A stretch of 64,000 nt of DNA from Botryllus schlosseri (lineage: Eukaryota), in NCBI GenBank assembly GCA_051294905.1, contig CM119386.1, positions 10,478,001 through 10,542,000 on the forward strand, in the 5' to 3' direction. The position numbers were made by a program, and so were the translations under genes. The first letter of the stretch is position 1; every line of letters begins with the position of its first letter. The notes below the pieces were generated by a model, which did not search any database, was not told the origin of the DNA, and was given only the letters and a program-made list of their open reading frames with translations. Positions 2,603 through 64,000 of this stretch are shown here, one piece after another.

Positions 2603-3802
2603 CCTATTGCCTCGCATCATGTCCAGCCGGCTGGACGGAAAGAAATGCCCGTTGCTACTCTGTCTTCAATACGCGGGTTTCATTTACTATGGCACGGTCA
2701 TACTGCCTTCAACTGGGCGGTGATCTTGTGAGCCTTGAGGATGCAGCCGAGAGAGTAAATTGACTGTCTTTTTTATGTAGTTTTCAAATCAACTTTGGAC
2801 AATCGTACATTTCAGGACTACATTTACAGCACATTCATCGAAGGTACAGGAGATAAATTTTGGGTGGGTGGAACTGATGTTCGGTATGAACAATCATTTG
2901 AATGGACAGATGGGACCCTATTCGACACGACAGTACCGTAAGTTGATCTTGAATTTTTTGACTATCTGTATTTCTTTGATTTTATACGGGATTCAATGTG
3001 TGACGATTGTGACATAATATCGGTCTGCTGGCTTAAATTTCTCCCTCTACTAGTGTACATCTTGAAGAGTTCTCGGCCAGCTGGCATAAAATTACCTTGG
3101 TTGATTATTAAATAAATTAATTATGGGAAGTTATAAGTCAAATATTCATTCAACAAATTATCCCATTACAACGAAATATTTTTCCTAAATCCTCAATCAT
3201 CAATGGAAATTCAATCAATGACAATCATCATGAAAATTTTGTTGAAAAGATTTACTACAAACATAGTGTTTTAATAATAGTTACACATTTCATGAACAAA
3301 TAATAAATATATAGATCCTATAATAACCCAAACTTTTCAAGCACTTCGGAGTAAAAATGTAAAACACCATACAGACACAACAGGCTGACAGATAATAGCA
3401 AAAGTTATTTTTTATTGTAAAAGCTTATTGATGATTATGTCAAAATTCGTAATGTTAAATTTACCCATGAGCCGCCCCATGGAAAGTATCATCCTAAAAG
3501 CTTCAGGTGTACTAAAAATGAGTGTATTGTCTATCATATTGAGATTCCGCATGACTCACTGCCTCTTCATCGTTGCCAGGCTATGGAAATTAGGACAACC
3601 GGACAATGGAGCTGACACGGGGGATGCATCTGTTCAGGAAGACTGCATAGCAATCAATGACGAGTCTACAAATCCAAATTCACGAGGCTCGTGGGATGAC
3701 AACCAATGCGGCAAATCAAGGTGTCTCTTTGTCCTGCTAATTCGTTTTGGGAGCGTTTAGAAATTAGCAACTTGCCATATACAGGGCTTACATATGTGAA
3801 AA
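2603..3802 (+). CDS. CTLD1 (QPD/WDD type); exons 2603-2754, 2816-2937, 3580-3720, start of 3785-3902
   Basis: [13 protein letters not shown]...FWVGGTD...EWTDG...WKLGQPDNG...EDC...[16 protein letters not shown]. Confidence 0.9.
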
Positions 3803-6800: not shown

Positions 6801-9800
6801 AATTCATATTGGGTTATTAACCATACACTATTTCACCTTTTAGGCTGAAAAAACTTGTGAAGATCTATGGAATTCCGAACTTACAGCGATTACGTCTGTC
6901 GAAGAGCAAACCGTTATCAATGACATGAGATTGAAAGTGAACAAAGATATATGGATTGGTCTATCTGATGTTGTAAGTAGCTGTGCGACTATAATTATAA
7001 TGCCCCACCTTCTGATCATGTTTAGTAATAGAGAGAGAGAGAGAGTATTTATTTTCATCCAACTGAAATACATAACAAACAGACAGCAATAATGGTACAG
7101 AAAATACGCATGCACAGTATTCGGTATCTGATAGGAATGATCGATATGACCTTGGAGGTCAATTAGTCTGATTACACCCGCATCAAACAGGTATACTTAT
7201 CTCTATATACAGTATGACTGCAACAAATGTTAGGTAAAAGGGAAAAAAAATAAAATTAAAAGATGGTAACATGCCTTGTATATTATGATATTTCTTTTGT
7301 CTTTGCCACAACTTCTGCTTATTACGAATTGAATGAAATGTAAAAAAGGAGTTTATTTTTGTGGTTACTCTGATATTCAACTCAAAGGCCAATCGTTTGA
7401 TCGAATTCAGATCTATCAAGTTGTCAGTAAAATCCCTACACATGATGACTCTTGTCTAAACAGTTTATAACCTTTGTCAAAACTTGATCTAATTCTGTAT
7501 ATTTTACTGGACTATGCAGTGTCTGTAAACGCCTGTTAGCCGCCATATTTCTTTGAAAATTTTTGAAAAATATATTTGAAAAAGTTGACCACTTATTGTG
7601 TCTTTCTGGTACCTCTATCCAGACAGCATATTTAGAGGTGAAGGTAGCGTTGCTGTAATATATTCTGAACTTTTCCCATATCGTCTTGAAATGTGAAGAT
7701 ATTTCATGATACGATGCGGAACATATTAAACTATTAATCCTCTAAATCCAACTCGTCATGAGTCAATAGCCCGTCATTACGGTTCATATCATCAATAGGA
7801 TACGCCAGGAACTTTACGCTGGAGCAATGGACACGACGTGCTTACCTATACTAATTGGGCGTCAAACGAGCCTACAGCTGTGTAAGTCTGAATATCATTT
7901 CATAATAAGTATGAAATGCCATTATAGGCTATTCAATTTGGTTGGCGTCTTTTGAAAAAATCGAATGAATGTTTTACGATTAAAATTGAAAAATGAATTG
8001 TTAGCACTGTAGAAATGCTGCTCCTGTATGATATATATTGAATAATTGGAAGGCCTATATATGGAACCTCGTTGCATGCACCTAATATTAAAAACAATCC
8101 TATAAGAGAATCATTCCCGATCATCGAAACCATTGTCATATTTACAGAGCTCCTGGTAAAAGCTGTGTCCAGTCAACTGTTGCTACCGATGGACAGTGGA
8201 ATAATGCAGAGTGTACTGACCAAAAGCCATTTATTTGCCGCAAAGGCTTGAGAGGTGAGTCGTACAGTTCTGTCATGTGTTCACAAGTATTCCTATGTTG
8301 TTATTGTTTGAATCCACACTGGCTGCTTTAATGATTGAAGGCTGCAGATAAATCACAGCATGGTATTGCTTGTGTTTGCTCGGTAGTTCCAAGGTGTCTT
8401 TGCCCATACAATATACGGTATATATTGTGATGTGCTATTGGCAATCATTAGGAGACAACGAATAATATTTTGAATAAAGTTTCCATGCTGTTCGACGATG
8501 GATGAGAAAGCCTTGTGGTAGAGTATTCGACTTCTTCATTGGTGGATTGTGGTTACGAGCCGTGACGAAGTCAGGCTAAATAAGACTGTAAAACCGGTAT
8601 ATCCGGCTAACCCACTAGGCAGCTGGCATTCCGGGATAGCATGGAGAGGAGAAATGGTGATCCTGACTCGATACCTTTCCAGTTCCTTGGCATGACTGTC
8701 GCCCAAGCACCTGAAGGCACTGACAAAAATTAACATAGGAGTATATGGTGTTTTCAATGGCTTTTTTTTCAAGCACTGTGATAGCACCCCTAGTCCGACA
8801 AAGTGTTATGTGATTATTTTTATTACAAGTATGTGAACGCAATCAAGTATTGACTGATTTTGTTCAGCTGTGTGTCCTGCCGGTTGGATCTATGGCCACG
8901 GGAAGTGCTATGAATTTATTTTGAATGAAAACTTCTTCCTCTCATGGACGCAAGCATACAAGTATTGTACGGCCCAAAATTCGCGAATGCTGAAAATACA
9001 GAAGTAAGATGAATTTTCCGATAACTACTGGTGTGTATGACAAACTATAGTCTTTGTCCATGAGACTAGAATGTTGATAGCATATTTTATTTATTTTTTG
9101 GGTCTTTTAATCATTTTTGAAGTTGAAAGCATTTATTTTGTAGTGCTTCATATTAAACCTTATTTATAATATGACTCATGTATTCAGTGACGACGAACAG
9201 CATTTTATCTCCTCATTCGGAACAGAGTTATATAAAGAAGGAGTTTTGCAATTGTGGCTTGGTATTTCTGGTAAGTTATTTTGGACAATGCAAGTCGGTG
9301 GAAAATGGTTTTTACTTACTGGTATCTACAGCTTTGAATGTAATGTAAGTCTGTACAACAATTACAGGTAATTGATAAAAAAGCAAAGTCTTTTTAGTGT
9401 CTGTACATGATGAAAAATAAATTGAAAATTGACAAAACAAACCAAAAACAGCAAATTTTAGGCGGTGTATGTAAATTCTTTATTGTAAAACAGCAAGCCC
9501 CCCTTTTCAACAGCTGAAAGCAACAATACTGTATCTTAAAATGCATAATCTATTCAAATATATGTAACAAAAACAGTCAGCCTACCCCCAAAATGTGTTT
9601 TTTGTTCTGGCCAAAGAAGTAAATAGATTTGCAATTCAGCAATAGTCGCTTCAAAATTCATGGTATTCCTTGACCATATTATTTTTTCAGTACTGGAGAT
9701 TGTAGCTTTAGAAAGATGATACCGGTAGTTAAATGTTTTTTACTTGCTTGCTACAATGATACATGCTACATTAGCTGATAATATTCTCTTCACATCATAA

Positions 9801-12800
9801 GGATGCGATCGGTTAGCCACAAGGTACAATAAAGAAGCCTACATACTGCATACATGATTACATAAAATTTGATTCAAGTATCACACTACTTGTACTTTTC
9901 AGTTGCTAACTGTGTTTTGATGATGAATTCAGTCCATTATATTTATAACTAACATCTATAGACCGGAAAACATGATCATCCGATCTCTGTCAGATATCTC
10001 CTGTGTTCAGATATCGGCCATGACCAACAGCTGACGTGGACAGATCAAAGCGCCATTACTTATACACAATGGGATGGAGCACACATCCCTCGAGAAGACC
10101 AAGATGATTGCGCTCAGTTTTACCTCGGAAAGTGTAAGAAAGTCATGTTTACATTGACATGTCAACGAGACTATGCTCAAATTCTAGTTTTGTCCTCTAG
10201 TTTCATGGTAGTGTGCCACCGGTCATTATGGAGTTTTTGTTCTAGAACCACTGACAAAAGCTTGTGGTGTGGAGTTTTCATGATATCACAGTTTTGTTGT
10301 GTTTTGAAATGATAAAAATATAATAAACTGATGCATCCTGGTCAGATGTGACTATTATTTTTAAGAATGATTCATATACCGACTCACTATTGTCCAGATT
10401 GGCCATAAAGTCATTGGAGTGAATGTTATAAAGTAGGCTACAATTTTGCGGGCTCTTCTGCTATTAATAAGTTTATATTTCGGTTCCTACGGTGAGTAGT
10501 AATTTCAAGAAGAATTTATTTAGCACCTTGAGAAGCAGAACATTTTTTCGTGATTTACGCAAAATCTTGTTGTCGATGAGATGTTTTGATCATGATATCC
10601 TCCACCAGATCTACATCATTAGAGGATAGACGCATCCTGTAATTTCTAAAGTCGTCACCCCTTCCCCCGATTATCTGCTAAATGTATGCGACCCATCGAC
10701 CAAACATTCTTTCGAAATTACGTACTTGATTACTATTCCTCATTTTCTACGTCTACTTGCAGCATTTCTAACGTTTCTTAAATAGTGCTGTCACTTGTAA
10801 TTGAGTGGAATCTACGTCGTTACTAATTTGTACTTGAGTAGCAATGCTGACTACTTTAACACCTCTTTATATATGTACAATATACATATCTACCATGTCG
10901 TCTTACCAATATATTTTCATTTCTACAATAATGACTGTTATAGTCATTTAAAGAGAGCTGTTTTATTTAGCTTTATCGAATTGGGAACTTCTCACCTGCT
11001 ACTCGCCACAGGCTTTCGTTTGCGAGGTTACCGAAGGAACGCCGATCTCTGATATTGAAGTGCCGGATGGTTTGTATATAGTTCTTCTACGTGAAAGTGT
11101 ACCCTACAAATCGCACTATTTGTCACTCTGCTATGGAAACCATAGCTTCCCAATGATATTCATTAAATCCATGTAGTGGTATGAAATAGGGCCAATATAC
11201 TTGAACGCTCGAGTAACTTAGGCCTTGTCACGAAACTAGGTAGTGTTTCTTAGCAATTTAGGTCCATGCAAAAGATTAATGTGAATATTTTTGGATATTT
11301 AGACAGTTTTGGTGGCATATTACAGGGGTGTCAAACATACAGTATGCGAGCCGCATTCGGCACGCCACACGATTTCTTCCCGCACGTTTGTAAAAAATGT
11401 TGAGATGTTTCGAAGTAAATACTTCCGTTAAATAGTCCCTCAAGACAGCAAATGTCTAGTATGTTCAAAGGCCGCATTGTAACCACTCGACTGCGGCATT
11501 GTAGTTTCACTCTAGTTACCACTAGGAACAAGCCGGCGACATTGACACCCAATTTCGAGAATGCAAAAAAGTGCACGAACACCGAGTTGATGGTTTTAGG
11601 GAAAACTGTCCAAAACGTAATTATTCACAGAAGTGCAAACTGCAAAACCGCTACATGCAGTTTAGTTACACAAAAATATATTTCAAATATCTGTGGTCAC
11701 ACTGGTGTGTCTCTTCCGACTCTAGAGGTCCCCGGAATGCAGAGAAACCTGAATCGTGATTTATAATAATAAAGAGCTTCTTGGAGGTACAGAACTTCAA
11801 TATACAATTAAATAGTATATTCATATTGAAATGAACCCGAATATTTTCGGCTGACACTCGTCAGGGGTAATCGTCAGCAACTAGTAGAGAATTGGAAAGA
11901 ACATCGTATATCAACAATCGTATCACAAAATATGACGTCACCAGCATGAAATTTCGAATGAGAGAGCGTTCAATGTACTATTTTTAGGTGGTACACGAAC
12001 TCCTTTTGTTGACAGAGTTTTGGTTGGTGTATTTTGATAAAAGTTGATTCCAAGGCACACAAATGGAATTGTGAACGGCCTCGCCCTACGATTCGAAATC
12101 GGTCGTCTCGATAATTATTCGCACAAATCGGATTATCCAACAGATGTTTGCCGATGGCAGAATGCTGATCGATCAAAGGCCATTAATTCTATAAACCTCA
12201 TTCCAACGTCTGCGGATACGGTTAAACCTCTTTTATTCCTCACAACGCTTACACAAGGTGAACGCCAGATTACGACTAAAGCAAGGTAGCATGGAAATAT
12301 GCTAGGGTTACCACACTTCCTCTTTTAAGTGGATTTGTCCTCTTTTTTGACTTTTTTGAAAGTGTCCTCGGTGGACGCCCAAAAGTCCTCTTTTTTGAGA
12401 ATTTTGGTAGGCTAAATATCGGGCCAAATTCGACTGAGATACAGTAAATCAGCACTGAAGTAACGCTCCGGCGGCTATTTCGGGAATTGAACCGGAAAGC
12501 TGACTTTTTTTTTGTCAATCAACCACTCGGTGGGAAAAATTTACCATTTTTTCAGGATTTTCCTCCGGTATTGCAAGTCTAAAAATTTCGAATAAGTGTC
12601 CTCTTCAGATTTCCAAAATATGGTAACCCTAAAATATGCCAACTTTTATGGGTGTTACCGCTGATCATCGTATTTTTATCAACTTCATTGTTCGCGAATA
12701 AAAGAGTCGCTACTTGCAACAAATAAACCCCCTATGATCCGTGATACAATGTAATATCTATGACATATATAATGCTTGATGAGAAAGTAAAGAAAGTGAA

Positions 12801-45800: not shown

Positions 45801-48800
45801 AGTTTTCAAGTAGACTTTATCTACTCAATTGGTTATGTTTTCTGGCAACTTCCATCTCTGCTTCGACAGTTTTTGGAGACGAACATATTACTTTCTCACA
45901 TTTGCGAATTTGTAGAAATTAGCGTTTGGGCAGATTTGTACCGATTTTAGGAATGACACTGTCTTGAAAACCATGCACTTTTACCCCTACACCGTGGAGG
46001 CAGGAGTTGATTCTGAAAATAGCATCTGTTTGTGGCGCCATCAGTCATTCCGCATATTTAGTCATTCCGCATCTTGCTATTTGATAGCCATTGCTTGCGA
46101 CTGACTAATGCAAGCACGCCCACGTACATGTTCAAGATACTTTCGAGACATTAAAATTTCTCGCAAATGCAAAATCCTGTACAGGATATAGATATTTAAC
46201 TGTATATCTGCTTCGCAAGTACAAACCGGTTGAATTAGGAAAATATCGAATGCAAAATTATTTCCAACAGAGTATAACCAGCGGACAGACCCAGTTCATG
46301 TGGATCGACGGTTCCGCCATGTATTTCACAAACTGGGCAACAAACCAACCGCAGGACACCTCGACAAGTACCGGATGTGGCGAAATGACAGTAGACGGCA
46401 CCTGGTCGTTGGAGGACAGCAATCATTGCAACACAAAACATTCTTTTGTATGCAAATACGAAGAATGTGAGATTGCGCCTTTTTCGCCTAGCTACTACTA
46501 GCTATCATCACTTACTATTATCGTTTCACGTCTTATGTTACAGACGTGTTTCCGACTCAAAGCCCAGGATTAGGCTTGTGCGACCCTGATTGGTTCGGCT
46601 TCGGAGACTACTGTTACTACGTAAAACCAGGTACGGTGGCTTATCATGTATGCCCAATGCCCTGTCATTATAATTTACTCAAAAACGATATATATATATA
46701 TTTGCGGATGATTTTTGTGCCGGCGGAACTATGAGACACTATCGCAATTAGATCTGTACCAAAAACTTCATTTTTGACTTTGAAACTAAATATGTTACGA
46801 TATTCGAAGTCCGAGAACTGAATGATGGACATTAGACATGCACAGTACACACTGCACAAGAAAATACGTATATTACCACAGTCAGTTTTAAATAAGCGAC
46901 GGATCCCATTGATCACACATACAGACAGCACAGTGGTCAACATAAGCGACTTACGTTCTTACGGCGACAGAAAAGCCCAGAAAAAGACCCCATGAAAGAG
47001 CGCACTGACAAGGAATGGAAAGAGCAACACAAAGCCGCAAAATAGAGACAAACATAGAAGAAAAAACTGTGATATCGGACACTAGGTGGATGTCAGTTTA
47101 AGAGACCGTGACTGGTTGTTCGGCATCCTACATTCTGTTCATTACGTCGCATTGTGTCTTATCGCATAGTACATTGTGTGTGTCTTGTTCAGACAAAAAT
47201 ATATTCTGACGATCATTATGATACATAGATTGATGCAGTGATAACTGATAAGCACTTCCCAAATTTGTTAATGTGCACAGCATCTTCTGTGACGATTAAT
47301 GAAATTTCGTGGAATGGAAATTGCTACAAAAAGGATATGCGAAATGTGTGTCTGCGGTGACATATGTCTGTCTTAGAGAGAAAGAGAGAGAGTCTTTATT
47401 TTCATCCAACCAAAATAAATAACAAATAGACGGCAATGATGGTGGTACAGAAAAAATGCATGCACACTTGCACAGTATTCAGTATCGGATAGGAATGATC
47501 GATACGACTGTGAAGGTCAACTAGTCTGATTACACACTGTTACTTCTTTAAGGCACTGGTAATCTTCATCTCTGTCATCAGTCACTTCACATTAGTGTCG
47601 CACAAGCATCTTGCAAATTCAAATGCAGCCATCTCCGATCTCTGACCTAATCTTCTTTTTGAAACTACCGGTACTTAATTCTGTAGTTTCAGACCTTTGA
47701 TTTTTTTACATCCACTTGTAGTATTGACGTCGCTGCGACGTTGACCACCTCTGCCTGTTTATGTGACAATGGAAATTGATTTTTAATTTTCTTCTGTAAG
47801 GCACCGCCATATCATGGGGAGACGCCGAGTCTACTTGCAACACCAGAGGAGGCTACCTAGTAAGCGTTCATTCCGATTTGGAAAATAAAGCCATCGATAG
47901 CTGGGCCGGCAGTCAAACCGTCTGGCTCGGACTGAAGAGAAACGCTTGGGGTATCATTTTTTGCGAAATAATCGGTACCTGTTCGAATGTGCCAATTTTT
48001 GATATCTACAGGCGGATGGGCTTGGAGCGATACTAGCGCGTTGGATTTCACGAACTGGAAAGCGGGTGAACCGAACGATTATGGCGAAACCGGTGAACAG
48101 TGCGCCGAGATGTACAAAGACGGGGTTTGGAATGATGTTGTCTGCACGAACGCAAGAGGATATATTTGCAAGAAGCATAAATGTAATCCGATATACAATT
48201 GACTATTCATATTTTCAGTTGACATTGGTCAGGGGTATAATCGTCCTCAACTATTTGAGACTTTAAAAAAACTTTGTATATCAACAGTCGTATTTCAACT
48301 TGAATATATTTTTCAATTGTACATTGAGGTTGTACCTCCACTAGTCTGTTCGGAATGTGAGATTTAATTCCTAATTCTAGACTGATTTCGTTTCCTGCCA
48401 AAAGCTTAGTCTGTATCTGGGTAATGACTGAAATTCTATTGAAATGTCATACAAAAGTTGTAAATTGATAGAAATTCCACATGTCAGATTCGAGTTGATT
48501 TCATGTTTTCCAAACCAAAATCGGTTACGGATTAGAGACTCGAATTCAAATCCTAAATTCATTTTGTATCCTGTCGAAAGCCTATCTGTAACAGGGTAAT
48601 GACTGGAATATTTTTCTAAAGTCCCATGAAAATTGTAAATTGTTTGAAATTCCATGTAAAAATCTGATTCCAGCAGGAAATAAATCATGCATCCAAATAT
48701 GATTCTCTTCCGGCCGACATCCTCAAATCAATTCCAAATCCCTGCTCATATCTGCCTGACATCAAACCTTGATAACTGCAATTGTGGTTTATCCGATTTT

Positions 48801-51800
48801 CCTGGATTCGGGACCGATGTTTATTCGTTACATCTCTGCGATTGCTGAAATGAAATCTTTCTCACTGTCTCGTTCTAATCTGCGTTGTCATAACTAAAGT
48901 ATTATATTACAGCGTATGCATCCTGCGCTTTCCCGTCGGCAGAACGTGTCGATTGCGGATACGCGGGAATCAACGAATACGAATGTTTGGAGCGGTTGTG
49001 CTGCTGGGATACGACAGACACGGCGTCCACCACTTGTTACTATTCGCGAGGTACCTTGTCCACAGCGTATCTGGTGAACCGAAAGGTTATAACGGATACT
49101 TTTGCGTAGACGACGCGCAGTGCTTGGAGAAAGGCGGCCAGTGTAAGGACTACATGCACAATACCTGCGAGCTGGGATTCGAACAGGGGCTGTGCAGCGG
49201 CGGCACTGCTAATCAGTGCTGTTTCGCTTGCGATGAAAACGACGACACGTGTAAGTGTTTTGATTGCCGATCCGCATGTGTGTTGAAGTTTGAGTGTGAT
49301 TGCGATTGGTTAAAATGATGATGAACTGATAACCGGTTTAATATAATGGGAAGCTGGTCACTAATCTCTATGTGCGCAGTAATAGCAATTATGCAATTAT
49401 GAACCTCAACCTCCATCTATCAAGGCTTTAGCAACGTATATGGGTCTTTTGGAACGATTTCTATCTATATTCAATTGAAGTAGTCATACATGAAACTCTA
49501 CGTCTCGCGAAACACAGATTACAATCTATAAACACTACTGGTCACTCTTTTAGTTTTCCTGGAAGGAGAAATTATCATCCTTTTGATTCCTATGCACCCG
49601 ACACATCGATCTTCAATCTTCATATTGATGGCCAGACACCAACTTTACGTTATAGTAGGTTGCGCTGTGAAATAACGCTTCGACTGATGTGACACTTTAT
49701 TTGCCGGATTCGCATTCCTCAAATTTTTTCTTTTTCATTAAAGAATTTCCTAAATGAGCCGTCGATAGCATCAAATTAATTGGCATTCTAGTAGGGCTGG
49801 GCAAAATCGAGTACCCTAGTGATTTGATTCTGAATCACGTATTATGCTTCGAGTTGAGTATTCGAATATCATTTATTATGATGTCATAACATATTGTAAT
49901 ATGTCAGATTTCAAATATGTACCCGGTATGCTGCCACAAAGAATATAATGCCTGTTATAGATCGCATTGAAGATACTTTGGTATTTGTTCGACCACACCG
50001 ATTTCATTGCACTTTGTGACAATGTTGTGGGATGAACATGACTTCGCAAATTTGTCATTTCCGTAACGTTCGTAGCTTTGTACTGTATGTTTCGTATGCT
50101 GCGATATAGCCAATCAAGGTTTATAGGCTTCCACAAACGAAATAGTGTTGAAACTATAATTCTCGTTGATAAATTAACTCGAATCATTGTGCCCGGCCTA
50201 CATTCTAGTAATAGTCATTGGTATTTTTATTTTCATATCCGCTACCCATAGAGAATAGGCAAACGACAGCTAGGTTGGGAACCCCAGACTTGAACCACCT
50301 CTAGATACTAGTGCCCAATAACTATCTATCAATTTTCAGTATCGACGAAATACTGAATTGTATGTTTTGTACTTGCTAAGCTTCGACACCGTAGCCTAGT
50401 ACAACATGAATGGTAGCATGAAGCTTTCTACCTGTAGGTAACGAACAAGTCGACGGTTGGGAAGATGGTGACGATGCATGCGAAAAGGACCCGAGCATAT
50501 CAGGAAAGTGCCAGTATAATTCAAACTACTGCAGCGGGACGTATCTGAGTGGAAAGTGCGGAGGACCGGCCCAACGCCAATGCTGCGCGAGTACGACATT
50601 GAACCGTGATAACCCGCTGTGGTACTATATGCGTTGTTTTCAGGCGACTACGTACCGCCCACCGATCCGCCCAGGACCACTGTGACCCCGTCCACTGACA
50701 AGACCGTGACGGTCACCCCGCAAACGACAACGACAAAAAGAACGACGGATTTTGCGCGCACTGAAGAAATCCCGGCGGCCGCCGGTATGTAACTCGCTTG
50801 GTTCATAAATACATTAGTAATGTTCAGCTCAGTTCATCATCATCATCATTGGTTTATCAGCAATTTTTATCAGTTCAATACACCACAAAAATGCGATACA
50901 ATGAAAAGATAGGAAGGTGTCGAAGCGACTTGAAGTAGTCTATGGAATCAGACACCCACCTTGGCCTAGGCGATGTAAAGAGGAGGCATGCATACTGAAT
51001 GGAAAGTAAAGAAGATAGTGTAGAAAAAGAAAGCGACAAAAAATGGGGCGGCATGTCATGGAAAGCGAGATCGATAGGCCAGTCGTGGTCCTGTAATCTT
51101 GAGGATGGACTAGTATTTATTTAGTAGTAATTGCTTGTATTTCGACTTGAATGTGGACATGCTCGTCGGATGGCTGGTGGTATACTGTTCCACACATCGG
51201 GTCCGGCATATTTGATAGAGCGATGATCTTTTTGGACGACGTGGACGCGCGTGTGTTGCACTTGTGCGCTTTTGATTCCGAGGTAAAGAAGTCATTGAAA
51301 TATTCGGGGCAACGACCGCAGTGGAGCTGTCAAAGGTGGTCTGCAACGAAGGACTTCTACTTTTAGGGAGTACTAGTATAGGTTTTGCTTACTTACACTG
51401 CTAACTTGAGTTGTTATAATCAGGGTTGTAATGACTCGACTGGACTCCGGTCATTTTTTCAAATGCGTAAAATGACTCGACTTTTTGTATTGACTCGACT
51501 TGTACTCGAGTCATTGTGCATGCCTCGAACCAATTCGTATGACTCGAGACTAGGACGGCCAAGACAGACATTTCATTGTAACTTCGAAGAATAGTAAGTC
51601 ACCAAATTATTGGTATTTCGTCTGTCAGTCCTGATACTTGGAAAATAGGGCCAGAAACTGTTGAGACTGAAGGAAATTTCAATACTAGGAATGCGAGCCA
51701 TTTTTTCAATTTTTTTTTCAAAAAAATGATTTTTTTTTCATATGTTACTCCTTGCTGGGCTAGAAAAAATCCTGTCCGGTGCATTAGATCTATTTTAATC

Positions 51801-54800
51801 CCTAAAAGGCATTAAGGAACAAATTTATTGGAAATTTTCGATGTGAGAATTTTCCCTAGAAATTAGTCTGAAAAATCACAAAATTCGACAAAAATCAAAT
51901 AAAAGTCGACCTTATAAGGCCAAATTTTTGTCAAAATCACAATGTCCACTAAAACACAGTCAACACAACAGTGAACCCAATGACTTGGACTCGGACTTGA
52001 GTCAAGTCACAACACTATGATTCAGACTTGACCCTCTACGAGCTGACTTGGACTCGGACTTGACTCGGTGGTGAATTGAAAATGACTCGAGTTAAAACTA
52101 TAAAAGTAAGATTGACTTGTGACTCGGTTACAACCCTGGTTATAGTTTTAGATTATTTCTACATATACTTGCTAGGGTTCAGTTTTTTAGACAAAAGTAG
52201 GCCTGGAATACTATGTACTCTACTTCTACTTGCACTTACGTAAGAATTTACAGTTACTCGAGTTAGTTCAGTGCTTATGATTTTAAACTAGTTACGCATC
52301 ACAGATTTCGTGGCGAGATAGCGTTGTGGTATAACCACAGCTGCAACACTAATGGGTTGCGGCAGGGTTGTAATGACTCGAGTCATGACTCGACTCGAGT
52401 CAGACTCGAGTCACGATTTTTTTATGACTCGACTTGACTCGAGTCATTTTCTTGAAATGGGAAAATGACTCGACTCGACTCGAGTCAATATTTGGATTGA
52501 CTCGACTTGTACTCGAGTCATTACGCATGACTCGACCCAAGTCATTGACTCGGCTTATTTTATATGACTTGAAGATGAAGAAATTTGCGAATCATAATGG
52601 CTAGATCAACGCATCCGACGAATTCTGCCGACATCGCTATTTGTCACCACTGCTTTCGTTGCACTTGTCTGATATATCAGATATGCCGCGGTAAAAACAA
52701 CAGAAAATGATACATAGTAGCAATGCATTGTACAAAATCGTCCATTGATGAAGAGGTGATAGATCCTCCGCAATAAAAGTACTCAAGACTTTTCAATTAT
52801 ACAAGCATACAATTGAATCAAAGTTCAATTAGAGCCAATGAAGTGACTCAGATGGTGAAGAGACTGATAAGCTCATGTGTAGATTTGAAGGCGATGATTC
52901 TTTGCATTTTTGGGCGACTAGAAAGAATGAGTATTCAATGCTCTTCAGTGTGGTTCAAAAATGCTTGTCAATTCCTGCATCTAGCGCACTAGTGGAACGT
53001 GTATTCAGTAGATGTGGATTCATTCTACGGCCATGCCGCTTTAACATATTTGAGGATCTCCTTTCCACATTAGTATTTTTGAGGTGTAACTCATTGATTT
53101 GATCTACTGTCTGTGAAAACACACAATGCCCTTCGTCCATTTGACGTTTTGTTAGGTATGTGCATTGTGCACGTGAGTAATAATGAATGGCTAATGTTGT
53201 GTGATGTTTGTACAATATGGCTGTTCTAAAATAACTTCTTTTTTATTTTACTGGGTGGTTACATGATAAAATTGTTATGTTGCATAAAAGGAACACTGAA
53301 TCTGGCTTAATTTGAAAAAAGTGGAATCAATGATCGGAGAGGAGAATATTCTGGATTTGAAAATAAATGGAGTATTTTAGTGAGAAATTTTTTCATATAA
53401 TATAATTACATAGTAGTAAGCCGACTATTTTTTCATATCCAAAACATTCTACTCTAATAACTTCACTTTTTCTAGTTGGAATTGAGTCAAATTTGCTATG
53501 AATCATATTTTTACACAATGTAACAATATCATGAGATAGCCGGTAAAATTCGAAAATCTCTATTTGTAATTAGTCTAAAATTTTCTTTCATAGCATTGCT
53601 TTCTACTGGTTGGAATTGAGCCAAATTTGATTTTTAGGCAATCTAGCAATTTTAAGAAGTAGCCAGAAAATTTGAAAAAATGTTTTTGAACAGCCCCATT
53701 GTACAATTATTTCTTCAATGCTGTAACTGCGATGTAGTCGGTAATGCAATTGGGAAAACCTTTAGTATAATCAAAAGGTATCTGTTCTGTTGTCACTGCA
53801 CAATGCACATAGTTGCATGCACGCTTTTACAGCATGCTGGCCTGTTGTAAATACCTCTACATAAACATTAGGGCTGTTCAAAAATAACTTTTTTTCCTGA
53901 ATCTTGTGGGTTACGTGATTAAATCGTTAGGTTGCCTTAAAAAACGACGCACACCAAATTTGAATTCATTCCAACCAATATTCGCGGATTTCGTAGAGTT
54001 TGAAAATTTCGAATTTGCCTATGAATGCAAAAAAAAAAAATTTTCAAATTTTTCTTCCAACCCCATAAAATTGTTGTGCTGTCTTTAATAACCATGCAAA
54101 GCAAATTTGACTTAATTCCAAGCCGTAGAAGCGGAGTTATTTGAGTTTTTCGATGACAATTCTAGGATTATCCCCCAATCAAGGATAATCCAAGATTTAT
54201 CATCGAAAAACTCAAATAACTCCGCTTCTACGGCTTGGAATTGAGTCAAATTTGTTTTGCATCGTTATTGAAGACAGCGCAACAATTTTATGGGGTTGGA
54301 AGAAAAATTTGAAAAAAATTTTTTTTTGCATTCATAGGCAAATTCGAAATTTTCAAACTCTACGAAATCCGCGAATATTGGTTGGAATGAATTCAAATTT
54401 GGTGTTCGTCGATTTTTAAGGCAACCTAACGATTTAATCATGTAACACGCAAGATTCAGGAAAAAAAGTTATTTTTGAACAGCCCTAATAAACATGCATC
54501 TATTGATTCTCTATCAACTAGTATCTTGAGGTGAATTTGTTGGTTCTCTATCAGATAGTATGTAGACGTGAATTCGTTGGTTCTCTATCAGCTATTCGTG
54601 AGCTATCGTCGATGTGTTCATAATAAAAACTGAATGCTTGTATTGGTGATGTATCAGACTGACAAGAGAGATATTTGATTTTAAGTTCTAAGATTAGTAA
54701 AGTTATCTTTAGCATCGGTAAATGAGGCCAGGACCTGTCCGTTATCTGCCTAAATAAACACGTGCCAAGACTCTGATAGGGACAAAATGAGCATGTTTCG

Positions 54801-56536
54801 CAAACAGGGAATTCGATATCACCCAAGCAGGATTGAAAACATGAGTTGAACATGACTTCAATACTGTGACTTGGACTCGACTCGAGTCATAACACCATGA
54901 CTCGGACTTGACCCTTTAAACGGTGACTTGGACTCGGACTCGAGTCTGTGATGAATTGAAAATGACTCGACTCGACTCGAGTCAAAACCACAAAAGTATG
55001 ATTGACTCGTGACTCGGAACCATGTGACTTGGTTACAACCCTGGGTTGCGGGTTATAGTCCGGCCTAGGTCGACTCCATAATACTTATCTAAGTGTTGGA
55101 GGTTTATCTAGGCTCCTCCTCGCCACGTGATATTCATGAGCGGTGTCTTATAAAATACCTAGAAGCGTACCGTGCTACAAGTCGGTAAATATGGAATAAA
55201 AAATAAAGTATATCGGCCTGGTGTAAAATTAACCAATGTAGTCGAAACACCTTGAATATCTAAATAAACAAACACTTGGGTTTTTGTTTACGTATCAAAT
55301 AAGTAAAATATCAGGATATGTAGTGCCCGAGTAGTGGCATTAGTGGTGATTCGTTCAAATATTTACTTCGCCTCAAATTCGAAGTTGCAAATCCGTTTCG
55401 TCGTAGCTCGAGTAAATCACTCCACATTTCAATGGCGCCTATTTTGATAAGAGCACAGACACATTTAAGCGATTCAAATCGATTACTAATTTCGATCTTT
55501 CGTCATTGTGGTCAGCCGTCGCGCGCGACATTGTTTTCTGCGGTAGTCTCTTGAAGTGAATCGATTGATACATCCGCCTCATCAAGAGTGTGTAATCGTA
55601 CAATGTAAATTGCAATCTCGCCACACACGCTGAAAAGCTCTTTGCTGATAGCCGCGCGCATGAGTAATGTTATCGTTGGTGGAATACCTTTTTTTTACTC
55701 AACTACTGTGTTATATTATTATTGCTTCAGCAGAAACGTCAAAGCGATTCGCGAACCAAAGGCGTGTCATCTTAACCAGCCACGCATCAGCACTCCCGCG
55801 CACAGTCCGACCATAAGTGCGTTTACAGTGTCGGCTGGTTTACGCAATCCAAGATCACTTGAAATCACTCATTCATGGTGGCATATAGGCTTAATTGTTG
55901 AGCACGAAAGTATTTCGGCCGCATGTTCCGTCACGTTGCAGAGTGGAAGAAGTATAGAAGATTTTCGGCTTTTACAAATTATATTTGCAATAGAATTACA
56001 GATACGTTTTTTACAAATCAGATTACAATTAGAATTATTGAATTCGCAAAAACTTGGAATTGTAATTAAATTCCCAATTAGAAAAATGCAAAATAAATCA
56101 AGTTCAGTACATGTAAAATCTTAGCAGATTTCATTCACGTAAGCACGATAATGACAAATCTCTAGTATTTGAATTGTCTGGTATAGTCACACTGACCCGT
56201 CTTCTCATTGTGCAGGCGGCGGTCTGAGCGGCGGCGCTATCGCCGGTATCGTGATCACTGTCCTGTTTCTGGTGGCCGGCGGCGGCCTTGCGTTCTACTA
56301 CCACCGCACCGGGTCCTTCCCCACGCCCACCAACTTATCAAGCAGTTTGCCGTTTTCGAAGAGAGAAGCCTACAGCCAACCGGCGGGAGGCTTCGACAAT
56401 CCGATAACCTACGTTAACGTGAGATTGAAATTAGACCTGTATACTTGCGCATTTTTGACGGTTGCGAATCTTTGTCTTTTGACAGAACCCCGAAGAAGAG
56501 GGCGGCGTGGAGTTTGGGGCGTCGTCGGACGCGTAA
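2603..56536 (+). CDS. MRC1-like: Macrophage mannose receptor (MRC1/CD206 family)-like multi-CTLD mosaic type I membrane receptor; 58 coding exons, 5'-partial
   Basis: Manual exon chain with AG/GT sites and matching phases at every junction and no in-frame stops, ending at TAA 56534-56536. Repeated CTLD motifs (CPxGW..CY, WIGL, WxDG, EPN/QPD, WND, YIC). CTLD5-12 and their linkers are collinear with human MRC1 CTLD1-8 as I recall that sequence (e.g. [21 protein letters not shown] vs WICQIQKG-QTPKPEPTPAPQ). Confidence 0.93.
3785..8254 (+). CDS. CTLD2; exons 3785-3902, 6844-6972, 7799-7881, 8148-8254
   Basis: [15 protein letters not shown]...AEKTC...IWIGLSDV...WSNG...NWASNEPT...SC...[16 protein letters not shown]. 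Confidence 0.9.
4961..5337. mobile_element. hAT-type MITE
   Basis: TIR TAGGGCAAGTTTT / AAAACTTGCCCTA with an exact 8-bp TSD GTCATCAC. Confidence 0.9.
5375..6767 (+). mobile_element. Internally deleted Chapaev3-like (CMC) DNA transposon with a decayed transposase remnant
   Basis: TIR CACTGGT.AACA / TGTTCACCAGTG with longer imperfect subterminal inverted repeats and a TAA TSD. Remnant peptides [24 protein letters not shown] and [17 protein letters not shown] (about 5700-6260) contain stops and frameshifts. Family assignment is from recalled motifs and the TWA TSD rule. Confidence 0.75.
7030..7445 (-). mobile_element. 3' tail of a non-LTR retroelement ending in AATAAA-(CT)n; second copy at 47375-47535
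   Basis: About 150 bp shared between 7030-7177 and 47375-47535, with a microsatellite tail on the minus strand. Confidence 0.7.
8545..8720 (+). mobile_element. Decayed SINE with a Meta-like central domain
   Basis: AAGACTGTAAAACCGGT..GGCTA.CC..CTAGGC..CT.GCA.T..GGGATAGCATGGAG is homologous to the core of the SINE at 14226. Confidence 0.6.
8868..11069 (+). CDS. CTLD3 (no canonical Ca/sugar motif); exons 8868-9003, 9188-9270, 10011-10133, 10971-11069
   Basis: [13 protein letters not shown]...LWLGISD...WTDQS...[29 protein letters not shown]. Confidence 0.88.
11770..12285 (-). mobile_element. 5'-truncated Penelope-like element fragment (GIY-YIG C-terminus plus 3' UTR/pLTR)
   Basis: [50 protein letters not shown] is homologous to the element at 39645, with a shared 3' UTR motif. 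Confidence 0.9.
12303..12631. mobile_element. hAT-type MITE
   Basis: TIR TAGGGTTACC / GGTAACCCTA with an exact 8-bp TSD AAATATGC. Confidence 0.9.
13074..13479 (+). CDS. CTLD4 N-terminal constitutive exons 13074-13274 and 13397-13479
   Basis: WKCDG...[38 protein letters not shown]...[22 protein letters not shown]; ends in phase 0. Confidence 0.92.
13727..13871 (+). CDS. CTLD4 C-terminal exon, variant A (EPN/WND, mannose-type)
   Basis: 145 nt, phase 0 to 1: [48 protein letters not shown]. Weak AAG acceptor and GTGCCT donor. Confidence 0.85.
14226..14450 (+). mobile_element. tRNA-derived SINE (MetaSINE-like core) with a (TC)n tail, located between the alternative exons
   Basis: A-box-like TAGTGTAATGG and B-box GGTTCGATCCC, followed by GGTCAGACCAAAGACT..AAAACTGGT..GCTA.CCTGCTAGGCGCTCAGCA resembling the Meta domain as I recall it. 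Confidence 0.75.
14925..15078 (+). CDS. CTLD4 C-terminal exon, variant B (QPD/WND, galactose-type)
   Basis: 154 nt, phase 0 to 1: [58 protein letters not shown] acceptor and GTACTG donor. Confidence 0.88.
15568..17992 (+). CDS. Pro-rich linker plus CTLD5 (EPN/WND); exons 15568-15606, 16797-16887, 16953-17041, 17104-17256, 17872-17992
   Basis: [12 protein letters not shown]; [16 protein letters not shown]...TWQEARLDC...GGDLASVN...LWIGAED...WRWSDGSPF...[14 protein letters not shown]...WNDLKC...GYICEK. Confidence 0.92.
18320..21006 (+). CDS. Discoidin (F5/8 type C) domain 1; exons 18320-18487, 19635-19761, 19821-19946, 20864-21006
   Basis: [22 protein letters not shown]...GW...QWIQVDL...VRGVITQG...[16 protein letters not shown]...ALRFEVVGC. 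Confidence 0.9.
18650..19000 (-). mobile_element. Heavily decayed CR1/L2-type RT remnant
   Basis: [18 protein letters not shown] and ININNRSLI resemble the post-YADD region of CR1/L2 ORF2. Confidence 0.4.
19973..20815. mobile_element. Older copy of the TAGGGCTGGGCA MITE family carrying a nested insertion
   Basis: Left end TAGGGCTGAGCACGATGATTCGAG matches 59710; the right end is degenerate and no clean TSD was seen. Confidence 0.6.
21080..22861 (+). CDS. Discoidin (F5/8 type C) domain 2; exons 21080-21207, 21732-21811, 21871-21993, 22717-22861
   Basis: CADSL...YAASSS...CWKP...QWIQLDLG...IAGILTQG...YVTEY...FSDNG...FPAN...TRFVRISP...[10 protein letters not shown]. Confidence 0.92.
22074..22315 (+). 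repeat. Dispersed repeat family B with a (TGA)n tail; inverted copy at 50827-51069
   Basis: About 240 bp with high identity to the reverse complement of 50827-51069; ends AATAAACCAATGATGAAATGATGATGATG. Confidence 0.9.
23477..23819 (+). CDS. LCCL domain; exons 23477-23638, 23697-23819
   Basis: VDCPAGC...[21 protein letters not shown]...GGTV...[11 protein letters not shown], matching the LCCL consensus (CPxxC, VYGTxxY, SSIC.AAVH.G, GV.S). Confidence 0.92.
24966..26690 (+). CDS. CTLD6 (EPN/WND); exons 24966-25151, 25551-25701, 5' part of 26633-26818
   Basis: GCPNGW..WLDWCY...GGDLASI...AWIGMSD...[22 protein letters not shown]...GRWNDQPC...LVCKM. Confidence 0.92.
26035..26560 (-). mobile_element. 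L2/CR1 LINE 3' fragment
   Basis: [31 protein letters not shown] then [25 protein letters not shown]: ORF2 C-terminus with a frameshift. Confidence 0.85.
26633..33440 (+). CDS. CTLD7 with an internal FN2 insertion; exons 26633-26818, 29324-29532, 29602-29691, 30260-30410, start of 33424-33541
   Basis: [14 protein letters not shown]...GGHLAAIN...FWIGL...[20 protein letters not shown]-[FN2]-...VGCFRMD..TGLWS...AC...ICEK. The 3' junction is ambiguous (see findings). Confidence 0.85.
27735..28822. mobile_element. hAT-Charlie-type non-autonomous element with a nested MITE at 27897-28198
   Basis: TIR CAGGGGTGGGCAAACT / AGTTTGCCCACCCCTG, exact TSD ATTTAGAG, GCGGCCCGC subterminal repeats. The nested CAGTGGT../..ACCACTG element has a 6/8 TSD (TTCTAAGA/TTCTGAGG). 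Confidence 0.9.
29602..30309 (+). CDS. Fibronectin type II domain (split over exon 29602-29691 and the 5' part of 30260-30410)
   Basis: [20 protein letters not shown]...[17 protein letters not shown]: four Cys with the FN2 spacing and the C-x-FPF-x-Y-x-G-x-x-Y-x-x-C and PWC hallmarks. Confidence 0.88.
31377..32841. mobile_element. Older copy of the CAGGGCCGTAAC hAT family, nested in 30539-33161
   Basis: Both ends are homologous to 58106-59415; 7/8 TSD GCTAGAAT/GCAAGAAT. Confidence 0.8.
31992..32280 (+). mobile_element. tRNA-derived SINE (Cys-like head) with an (AAAC)n tail
   Basis: A box TAGCGCAGTGG, B box GGTTCGAGTCC, GCA at the anticodon position, then about 200 bp of non-tRNA body; second copy split at 52310-55275. 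Confidence 0.88.
33424..34642 (+). CDS. CTLD8 (EPN/WND; equivalent of MRC1 CTLD4); exons 33424-33541, 33714-33841, 33903-34002, 34513-34642
   Basis: DCPYGW...SYCYQ...SWADADIYC...FWIGL...[26 protein letters not shown]...[15 protein letters not shown]. Confidence 0.92.
35133..36977 (+). CDS. Linker plus CTLD9 (EPN/WND); exons 35133-35177, 35235-35416, 36091-36259, 36862-36977
   Basis: ECGTDSQW...KYCY...GGDLLSIHS...FWIGL...EWVDG...[12 protein letters not shown]...[17 protein letters not shown]. Confidence 0.92.
37506..44373 (+). CDS. CTLD10 (EPN/WND); exons 37506-37647, 43941-44086, 44265-44373
   Basis: [10 protein letters not shown]...TWRDSESYC...GGFLASV...AWIGLS...WSDN...[26 protein letters not shown]. 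Confidence 0.9.
39457..42060 (-). mobile_element. Penelope-like retroelement, 5'-truncated, with an inverted copy of its 3' part (tail-out inverted pLTR)
   Basis: 39457-40055 and 41446-42034 are near-identical inverted repeats flanking the RT region. Confidence 0.95.
39645..41440 (-). pseudogene. Penelope RT + GIY-YIG endonuclease ORF, 5'-truncated, with one frameshift near 41122
   Basis: [14 protein letters not shown] / [45 protein letters not shown] and the GIY-YIG-like VYDF..C..RYVGRT..L.ERI.QH. Confidence 0.95.
44434..46466 (+). CDS. CTLD11 (non-canonical QPQ/WSL); exons 44434-44571, 45398-45513, 46271-46466
   Basis: [14 protein letters not shown]...SWSDARDKC...ELASV...SWIGL...MWIDG...NWATNQPQ...GCGEM...HC...FVCK. 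Confidence 0.9.
46544..48182 (+). CDS. CTLD12 (EPN/WND); exons 46544-46630, 47801-47950, 48012-48182
   Basis: [14 protein letters not shown]...SWGDAESTC...VWLGL...WAWSD...[28 protein letters not shown]...GYICKK. Confidence 0.92.
48913..49050 (+). CDS. Trefoil (P-type) domain exon
   Basis: [30 protein letters not shown]...TCYY, matching C-x6-RxDCG(Y/F)xGI..xxC...CCWD...CY; symmetric phase 1-1 exon. Confidence 0.93.
49110..50590 (+). CDS. Two beta-defensin-like six-cysteine repeats; exons 49110-49250, 50438-50590
   Basis: [34 protein letters not shown] and [36 protein letters not shown] (C..G.C..C...G.C.G....CC); both are phase 1-1 exons. The fold assignment is inferred from Cys spacing only. 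Confidence 0.7.
49792..50200. mobile_element. hAT-type MITE (TAGGGCTGGGCA family), reverse orientation relative to 59710
   Basis: Ends TAGGGCTGGGCA / TGCCCGGCCTA with an exact TSD CATTCTAG. Confidence 0.88.
50644..50784 (+). CDS. Thr/Pro-rich mucin-like stalk exon
   Basis: [34 protein letters not shown]...; phase 1-1. Confidence 0.85.
51110..51370 (-). mobile_element. L2/CR1 LINE 3' fragment
   Basis: [16 protein letters not shown] and [15 protein letters not shown]-stop in adjacent frames. Confidence 0.75.
51421..52138. mobile_element. GACTCGAGTC-rich hAT non-autonomous element
   Basis: TIR CAGGGTTGTAA / TTACAACCCTG with a 7/8 TSD GTTATAAT/GTTATAGT. Confidence 0.88.
52363..55043 (+). mobile_element. 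hAT deletion derivative retaining the transposase dimerization domain (about 52875-53095)
   Basis: TIR CAGGGTTGTAA / TTACAACCCTG, exact TSD GGTTGCGG; peptide [46 protein letters not shown] matches the hAT C-terminal dimerization motif. Confidence 0.93.
53869..54487. mobile_element. 619-bp foldback (almost fully palindromic) hAT-type MITE nested in 52363-55043
   Basis: About 290-bp near-perfect inverted arms starting TAGGGCTGTTCAAAAATAAC; exact TSD ATAAACAT. Confidence 0.95.
56216..56536 (+). CDS. Transmembrane helix and cytoplasmic tail; exons 56216-56418, 56486-56536
   Basis: [28 protein letters not shown] (TM), then ...[10 protein letters not shown]|[16 protein letters not shown]-stop. 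Confidence 0.92.
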
Positions 56537-63876: not shown

Positions 63877-64000
63877 CTACGCATTCGAAGACCCGAACTC
63901 CACCTCGCCATCATCCTCCGTTTCCTGGCAAAAACAAACAAACAATATGCACATATTCGAGAAGCCGCAGACGCAAAAGACATAGCTACCTTCACGTAAG
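63877..64000 (-). CDS. 3' end of a convergent paralogous receptor gene: last 11 nt of the penultimate exon (63990-64000), 65-nt intron, last exon 63877-63924
   Basis: Minus strand reads ..YVK|gtagct...tttttgccag|ETEDDGEVEFGSSNA-TAG, mirroring ..YVN|gtgaga(67 nt)..gacag|[19 protein letters not shown] of the main gene, with the same intron position and phase. Confidence 0.85.
   Translation of the reverse strand, partial: LREGSYVFCVCGFSNMCILFVCFCQETEDDGEVEFGSSNA

Follow-up and report, generated by a model that had tools for sequence, protein, structure and literature searches.

A mosaic 12-domain lectin receptor gene of Botryllus schlosseri and its probable place beside the mannose-receptor family

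A stretch of 64,000 nucleotides from Botryllus schlosseri (assembly GCA_051294905.1, contig CM119386.1, positions 10,478,001 to 10,542,000 of the forward strand), referred to here as the window, poses the question of whether a mosaic lectin receptor was put together within one lineage or inherited as a whole. The receptor gene lies at 2603-56536 on the plus strand of the window (positions without a prefix are counted from its first letter). The initial annotation, made from the letters of the DNA, regarded it as an MRC1-type receptor on which several kinds of module had accreted in this lineage, at defined points of a conserved frame. Comparison with other animals leads to a different answer: the receptor adds a new member to a known but functionally uncharacterised family, and its mosaic is conserved, not a lineage-specific invention.

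The encoded protein consists of five C-type lectin-like domains (CTLDs), two F5/8C (discoidin) domains, an LCCL domain, seven further CTLDs with an FN2 domain inside CTLD7, a trefoil, two six-cysteine (6-Cys) repeats, a stalk rich in serine, threonine and proline, a transmembrane (TM) segment, and a tail with the motif FDNPITY. Very probably the locus represents one expressed gene, whose product is a type I membrane glycoprotein of about 2,560 amino acids (aa) in a conserved family that is the sister of the mannose-receptor (MR) family.

Gene model and transcript evidence

The window is AT-rich animal DNA with a GC content of about 0.40 and no N, and its plus-strand open frames contain many CTLD fragments. 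The model joins 56 exons into one open frame of 2,538 codons that ends with a TAA at 56534-56536. All 55 introns are of the GT..AG type, reading phase is kept at every junction, and there are no internal stops. The model was built junction by junction: every donor/acceptor pair was scored by its splice signal and by how well the joined peptide scored in BLASTP, with multi-CTLD homologues as guides. It replaced a first attempt, an exon chain obtained by dynamic programming, in which exons ran too far into introns. Pfam was run on single exons, its results on raw stop-to-stop frames having been too weak for domain definition. CTLDs were found with a hidden Markov model (HMM) made from homologues within the analysis script, where BLAST was also run, and the 6-Cys repeats, stalk, TM segment and tail were identified directly in the translation. 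The resulting domain order agrees in every item with that of the initial annotation, and the exons span exactly 2603-56536.

Transcripts were checked over 17865-23864, using contigs from three runs of two studies (X15, X16 and X18) together with raw reads from RNA run X24. All ten introns predicted between 17992 and 23697 are seen in the transcript-like contigs as GT..AG joints at the exact places, and a single contig of 1,736 nt begins in CTLD5, crosses the two F5/8C domains and extends into LCCL.

Three observations weigh against a single expressed gene. Run X24 gave no reads on exons within 17865-23864; 45 of the 55 introns are placed by homology, phase, and splice signals alone; and both the join from LCCL to CTLD6 (23819>24966) and the first exon are inferred from the sequence. 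Exon chaining might thus have fused two or three neighbouring genes, namely a 5-CTLD, a discoidin-LCCL, and a 7-CTLD gene. Such a fusion would fit a model in which the LCCL-CTLD6 junction and most others are placed from sequence, and it would fit homologue protein models that are themselves largely automatic predictions. It is nevertheless very improbable, given the contig that links CTLD5, both F5/8C domains, and LCCL, the preservation of phase without a stop through all codons, the lack of any exon for a signal peptide or TM-like segment at the points where the genes would be divided, and the recurrence of the same domain order in many phyla.

The single-gene model begins within CTLD1 at 2603, behind a phase-1 acceptor, and a signal-peptide exon was not found inside the window. 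A candidate first exon lies 2.2 kb upstream of it (L003:7769-7823, equivalent to G000:C16:10475769-10475823). This exon carries an ATG and an 18-aa signal-like peptide with a hydrophobic core, and it closes with a phase-1 donor (donor score 5.5).

A family of split CTLD arrays beside the mannose receptors

Relatives of the receptor were sought with the 102-aa exon 44265-44570 as query against 1.84 billion cluster representatives. The matches were long multi-CTLD proteins of amphioxus, a crinoid, a hemichordate, an annelid and the tunicate Styela clava, none of them near-identical, and no vertebrate MRC1 was present among the top 150. The Styela protein (XP_039270230, P0171) aligns with the receptor at 34.7% identity over receptor residues 6-960 and at 37.1% over residues 962-2307. 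These two high-scoring segments pair residues 6-2307 of the receptor with 26-2408 of P0171, and the sole break between them is a Kringle domain in Styela. A CTLD score matrix between the two proteins follows the diagonal for 11 of the 12 domains. Pfam reports 13 Lectin_C stretches in P0171, along with two F5/8C domains, Kringle, LCCL, fn2, and Trefoil; the 13 stretches correspond to 12 CTLDs because the FN2 insert splits CTLD7. The insertion point of FN2 is identical in the two tunicate proteins, while teleost CTLD7 is without the insert, and the trefoil occupies the same place before the stalk.

The arrangement extends well beyond tunicates. In amphioxus (P0001 and P0004), a SUEL domain, two F5/8C domains and LCCL stand between the CTLD blocks, and in teleosts (P0026 and P0327), F5/8C and LCCL are flanked by five and seven CTLDs. 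Teleost members from Danionella, Knipowitschia, Syngnathus and Muraenolepis all have F5/8C, mostly with LCCL and often with SUEL. The split into five and seven is clean in Danionella, Knipowitschia, Styela and the annelid Owenia, but not in Syngnathus. Owenia carries three F5/8C domains and a WSC domain at this point, while the crinoid Anneissia and the hemichordate Ptychodera keep the same frame around an insert of PAN and a farnesoic-acid-methyltransferase-like domain. Judged from these sequences, the F5/8C and LCCL insert is at least chordate-wide.

The same plan was described two decades ago. A GenScan prediction from Fugu, ‘DEC-205-FUSE’, places LCCL and FA58C between an N-terminal block of five CTLDs and a C-terminal block of seven, and it was regarded as a possible member of group VI for which there is no human orthologue (Zelensky & Gready 2004, PMC514892). 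A literature search found no study of a DEC-205-FUSE-like family after that paper. Its relatives include the Styela protein, annotated as ‘lymphocyte antigen 75-like’, LOC118411508 and LOC118411324 of Branchiostoma, and teleost proteins of Knipowitschia, Danionella and Syngnathus labelled MRC1-, MRC2- or PLA2R-like. They have in common with the Botryllus receptor the 5 + 7 CTLD blocks around F5/8C and LCCL, a single TM segment, and a (G/A)F(D/S)N motif in a short tail. As humans lack a member and no study of function was found, members of the family are mislabelled in databases as MRC1, MRC2, LY75, or PLA2R ‘-like’. The Botryllus receptor differs from them in detail. It lacks the Kringle of Styela and the SUEL lectin of amphioxus and some teleosts, and its CTLD4 has a candidate alternative exon (EPN/QPD) that sets it apart. 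The architecture, whose novelty the initial annotation had made conditional on its not being common and described already, is therefore largely an established one.

How the family relates to the mannose receptors was addressed with a set comprising MRC1, MRC2, PLA2R1, LY75, and tunicate MR-family proteins reached via sturgeon and Ciona proteins. All receptor CTLDs were scored against all MR CTLDs, and the matrix was double-centred and averaged over ten MR proteins. The best partners of MR CTLD1-8 are receptor CTLD5-12, in order, in eight of eight cases (permutation p 4e-5). The mean along the offset-4 diagonal is 31, and no other offset exceeds 4.4. Offset 4 is also the best when members from Styela, a teleost, Owenia, and the crinoid are compared with the vertebrate-only set of MRC1, MRC2, and PLA2R1. 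The collinearity of CTLD6-12 with MRC1 CTLD2-8 proposed at the outset thus holds, and it extends by one domain, CTLD5 taking the position of MR CTLD1. The likeness holds for two linkers as well: the one between CTLD6 and CTLD7 (E.V.EGC..GW) is similar to the MR 2-3 linker, and the one between CTLD7 and CTLD8 (G-Y/V-T..P.PTT) to the MR 3-4 linker. A per-domain phylogeny, which had been suggested as a check, was computed as a maximum-likelihood tree of 91 CTLDs. It groups domains of the two families by position, as in CTLD8 with MR4 (85/73), CTLD12 with MR8 (82/75), and CTLD5 with MR1 (45/95).

Collinearity of this kind could also be expected if the receptor were the MRC1 orthologue of the genome, into which five kinds of module had been inserted in this lineage alone, and the two 6-Cys repeats missing from P0171 would suit such a history. 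That explanation is scarcely credible. A separate MR-family locus of the Kringle-FN2-8 CTLD type is present on another chromosome of the same genome (G000:C2:7264039-7286282, plus strand), where it is collinear with residues 66-1593 of Styela P0324 at 48-84% identity per exon. The 5 + 7 plan around F5/8C and LCCL recurs in a tunicate, amphioxus, teleosts, and the Fugu prediction, and both the FN2 in CTLD7 and the trefoil are common to Styela. In the homologues, moreover, the signal peptide is followed directly by CTLD1, with neither a ricin-type cysteine-rich domain (CysR) nor FN2 there. Lineage-specific accretion on an MRC1 chassis is consequently not borne out for the core of the receptor. 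Given the collinear locus on contig C2, the receptor is not the MRC1/MRC2-type orthologue of this genome, but very probably a member of a sister family to the MR family (CTLD group VI).

The N-terminus tells the same story. The initial annotation had left room for a ricin-like or FN2 N-terminus upstream, and neither was found. Pfam searches of P0171, P0001, and P0016 returned no PF00652 or PF24562, and for the receptor itself the 5' exon offers only the signal-like candidate described above. FN2 was likewise not found between a CysR and CTLD1; the sole FN2 is the one within the CTLD7 loop. The receptor shares with the MR family the tandem array, the similar linkers, a type I TM segment and an FxNxxY-type tail motif, and its CTLD8 and CTLD9 preserve the sugar-binding motifs of their counterparts, MR CTLD4 and CTLD5. 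It differs in having four extra N-terminal CTLDs, in lacking CysR and an N-terminal FN2, and in carrying FN2 within a CTLD loop. Its discoidin-LCCL block separates CTLD5 from CTLD6, the counterparts of MR CTLD1 and CTLD2. The EPN/WND motif occurs in seven of its CTLDs, compared with two in MRC1 (CTLD4 and CTLD5 only).

Some results sit less easily with membership in a sister family. The CTLD tree has moderate support values, which are weak for some of the position clades (71/10, 45/95). Identity between the receptor and P0171 is about 36%, while that of the MR orthologue is about 60%, so P0171 may be a paralogue and not a strict orthologue.

A broader history can be proposed, and the chances that all of its parts hold together are about even. 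On this proposal, a pan-bilaterian family of 12-CTLD proteins was lost in tetrapods, and its CTLD5-12 correspond one-to-one with MR CTLD1-8. Both families would descend from an ancestor with an ordered array of at least eight CTLDs that existed before the bilaterian phyla split. The boundary between CTLD5 and CTLD6 would be a recurrent hot spot of insertion (F5/8C-LCCL, SUEL, Kringle, WSC, PAN, and the farnesoic-acid-methyltransferase-like domain), and two defensin-fold modules would have been tethered to the stalk in the present lineage. No paper stating the one-to-one relationship between the 12-CTLD family and the MR family was found in a literature search. The mapping of the last eight CTLDs, together with the larger number of intact sugar-binding sites in the receptor, offers a handle on the origin of the mannose-receptor family.

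The 6-Cys repeats and the proposed function

Lineage specificity, which the initial annotation extended to every added module, survives for one kind only. The F5/8C, LCCL, FN2, and trefoil modules are shared with relatives, and only the two 6-Cys repeats, judged against a single Styela protein, are apparently lineage-specific. They stand between the trefoil and the stalk, are absent from P0171, and among the relatives examined are present in the Botryllus genome only. Each occupies a phase 1-1 exon. Repeat 1 (49110-49250, plus strand) has the spacing C-x6-C-x7-C-x9-C-x7-CC, and repeat 2 (50438-50590, plus strand) has C-x9-C-x6-C-x8-C-x7-CC, with the end CGGP..RQCC.

Further copies occur elsewhere in the genome. 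A paralogue with the same C-terminal modules lies tail-to-tail with the receptor, starting at 63993 on the minus strand and running to G000:C16:10560874. Identity to the receptor is 79-92% in its stalk and Cys-repeat exons, 40-76% in its CTLD exons, and 87% in its LCCL exon (G000:C16:10560716-10560874). On contig C6, at least nine 6-Cys exons spaced about 2 kb apart form a tandem cluster (G000:C6:13302823-13410630) with the module pattern C..GG.C..NSNYC..Y.SG.CGGP..RQCC, which may represent either a set of genes for small secreted peptides or a single gene with many repeats. Other copies are found on C16 at 2.155 Mb, on C15 and on C5.

The fold of the repeat is a lead rather than a finding. 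The repeat belongs to no Pfam family, gave no usable match in the ESM-Atlas, and retrieved nothing significant from the PDB with Foldseek; a profile search yielded a marginal match to the midkine N-domain in the PDB (E 0.03). An AlphaFold model, built on a shallow alignment of 12 sequences, reached a best pLDDT (predicted local distance difference test) of 83.5, and one of five models exceeded 80. When the model was compared by VIA-align, nine of the 11 chains with Z>=2 had the beta-defensin fold, with Z values of only 2.2-3.5, and 35-38 of 42 residues were superposed on beta-defensins at 2.0-2.4 A. The defensin structures hBD-2 (1FD3), AvBD11 (6QES), and crotamine (1H5O) have six cysteines that end in CC, with spacing similar to that of the repeat. 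They differ in the distance between the second and third cysteines, which is 6-7 residues in the repeat and not 4. There is also no match at the level of sequence, and the module is part of a receptor ectodomain and not a free cationic peptide. The modelled ‘defensin-like’ fold therefore stands as a lead, with the midkine N-domain as an alternative.

Mannose receptors are recycling endocytic receptors. The motifs of the Botryllus protein would suit a similar role, and the earlier reading of the receptor as an endocytic multi-lectin protein is a reasonable one. The EPN...WND motif, of the Ca2+/mannose type, is kept in seven CTLDs (4, 5, 6, 8, 9, 10, and 12), through which the ectodomain would bind glycans multivalently, and the discoidin, LCCL, FN2, and trefoil modules would add further ligands. 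The tail, GFDNPITY, would recruit clathrin adaptors and so lead to uptake. It resembles the FENxLY of MRC1 (SFENNLY), and family members from annelid to amphioxus conserve GFDNxxY. Exon 56216-56418 encodes the TM segment together with the FDNPITY tail, and the last exon follows at 56486-56536 (51 nt, including the TAA), both on the plus strand. On these predicted features, the protein is most likely a multivalent recycling endocytic glycan receptor, acting as a scavenger or pattern-recognition receptor. The family as a whole is likely to provide a major multivalent glycan receptor of invertebrate chordates and fish.

One observation detracts from this proposal: the tails of Styela and of teleosts are without the tyrosine of the GFDNxxY motif, and endocytosis via the tail motif is thus not universal in the family. 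The same tails would suit a surface or shed lectin that is not endocytic and serves in adhesion, matrix binding, self/non-self recognition or recognition of the microbiota, and in which the defensin-like modules, tethered or released, would have an antimicrobial or binding function. Binding to matrix or mucus is typical of discoidin, LCCL, FN2 and trefoil domains, the cluster on C6 resembles small secreted-peptide genes, and the tail-to-tail paralogue evolves fast, all of which would accord with such a lectin. It is an unlikely alternative given that GFDNxxY has been retained in the receptor itself as well as from annelid to amphioxus, and that the MR family, the nearest characterised relatives, is endocytic. 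An endocytic glycan receptor is accordingly the preferred proposal.

Domains along the gene and other loci

With the CTLD HMM, five CTLDs are placed at residues 13-730 and, after a gap of 448 aa, seven at residues 1179-2271. All features described below are on the plus strand unless stated otherwise. CTLD1 (2603-3902; HMM residues 13-154) is built from exons 2603-2754, 2816-2937 and 3580-3720 and the start of 3785-3902, and it carries QPD...WDD. CTLD2 (3785-8254), identified by its junctions and the HMM, shares exon 3785-3902 and continues through 6844-6972, 7799-7881 and 8148-8254. CTLD3 (8868-11069; exons 8868-9003, 9188-9270, 10011-10133 and 10971-11069) is without a sugar-binding motif.

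CTLD4 (13074-13871; exons 13074-13274, 13397-13479 and 13727-13871) has EPN...WND. A candidate alternative third exon at 14925-15078 carries QPD...WND. The two third exons have equal entry and exit phases, and their lengths both leave a remainder of 1 when divided by 3, so the presence of both in one transcript would shift the frame. They are consequently candidate mutually exclusive exons, one per transcript. Between 13871 and 14925, no CTLD a or b exons were found.

CTLD5 (16797-17992; exons 16797-16887, 16953-17041, 17104-17256 and 17872-17992) also has EPN...WND and occupies the position of MR CTLD1. The joint that leads from it into the first F5/8C domain (17992>18320) is present in the contigs. 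That domain (18320-21006) consists of exons 18320-18487, 19635-19761, 19821-19946 and 20864-21006, and the second (21080-22861) of exons 21080-21207, 21732-21811, 21871-21993 and 22717-22861; both were recognised by Pfam (PF00754), and their joints are seen in the contigs. The exons match successive parts of PF00754, at positions 22-53 and 87-127 in the first copy and 47-88 and 87-125 in the second. LCCL (23477-23819) is divided between exons 23477-23638 and 23697-23819, which match PF03815 at positions 19-58 (E 2.6e-14) and 61-96 (E 2.6e-5), and contigs contain the joints 22861>23477 and 23638>23697.

CTLD6 and the linker into CTLD7 (24966-26818; exons 24966-25151, 25551-25701 and 26633-26818) show EPN...WND at the position of MR CTLD2. 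CTLD7, equivalent to MR CTLD3, spans 26633-33541 with exons 26633-26818 and 29324-29532, the second part of 30260-30410, and 33424-33541. Its FN2 domain, inserted after the QNQP loop, is encoded by exon 29602-29691 and the first part of 30260-30410. In its first half, this domain aligns with PF00040 positions 1-21 (E 1.6e-7); its second half shares an exon with the remainder of CTLD7.

CTLD8 (33424-34657; exons 33424-33541, 33714-33841, 33903-34002 and 34513-34657) carries EPN...WND and corresponds to MR CTLD4. A proline-rich linker exon of 45 nt (35133-35177) precedes CTLD9, which lies within 35133-36977 (exons 35235-35416, 36091-36259 and 36862-36977), again with EPN...WND and equivalent to MR CTLD5. 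CTLD10 (37506-44571; exons 37506-37647 and 43941-44086 and the start of 44265-44571) has EPN...WND and the position of MR CTLD6. CTLD11 (44265-46466; the second part of 44265-44571, then 45398-45513 and 46271-46466) is the equivalent of MR CTLD7 and is without a sugar-binding motif. CTLD12 (46544-48182; exons 46544-46630, 47801-47950 and 48012-48182), with EPN...WND, matches MR CTLD8.

The trefoil, or P-type, domain is a single phase 1-1 exon at 48913-49050. It matches PF00088 with E 4.2e-12 and 46.2 bits, above the gathering cut-off of 21. The stalk is also a phase 1-1 exon (50644-50784), and the introns that separate the trefoil, the first and second 6-Cys repeats, and the stalk measure 59, 1,187, and 53 nt.

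Several repeats are found within the introns. The 6.3-kb intron of CTLD10 (37648-43940) contains a Penelope-like retroelement with a 491-aa open reading frame on the minus strand (39648-41120), which matches reverse transcriptase and GIY-YIG. A hAT transposase remnant comprising the C-terminal dimerisation domain (52842-53099, plus strand; PF05699, E 5.5e-9) lies in the intron at 50785-56215. A short repeat at 22065-22464, inside intron 21994-22716, reaches a contig depth of about 52,000, with poly-A-like loose ends, in all four runs, and is probably an abundant transcribed element resembling a short interspersed element. At the edge of the window, positions 1-380 form a repeat of about 380 bp that occurs in at least 40 places in the genome at 85-99% identity. 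Finally, at least seven LCCL-like exons are present within 20 kb at G000:C16:4550207-4570714 (plus strand) and may belong to a multi-LCCL gene.

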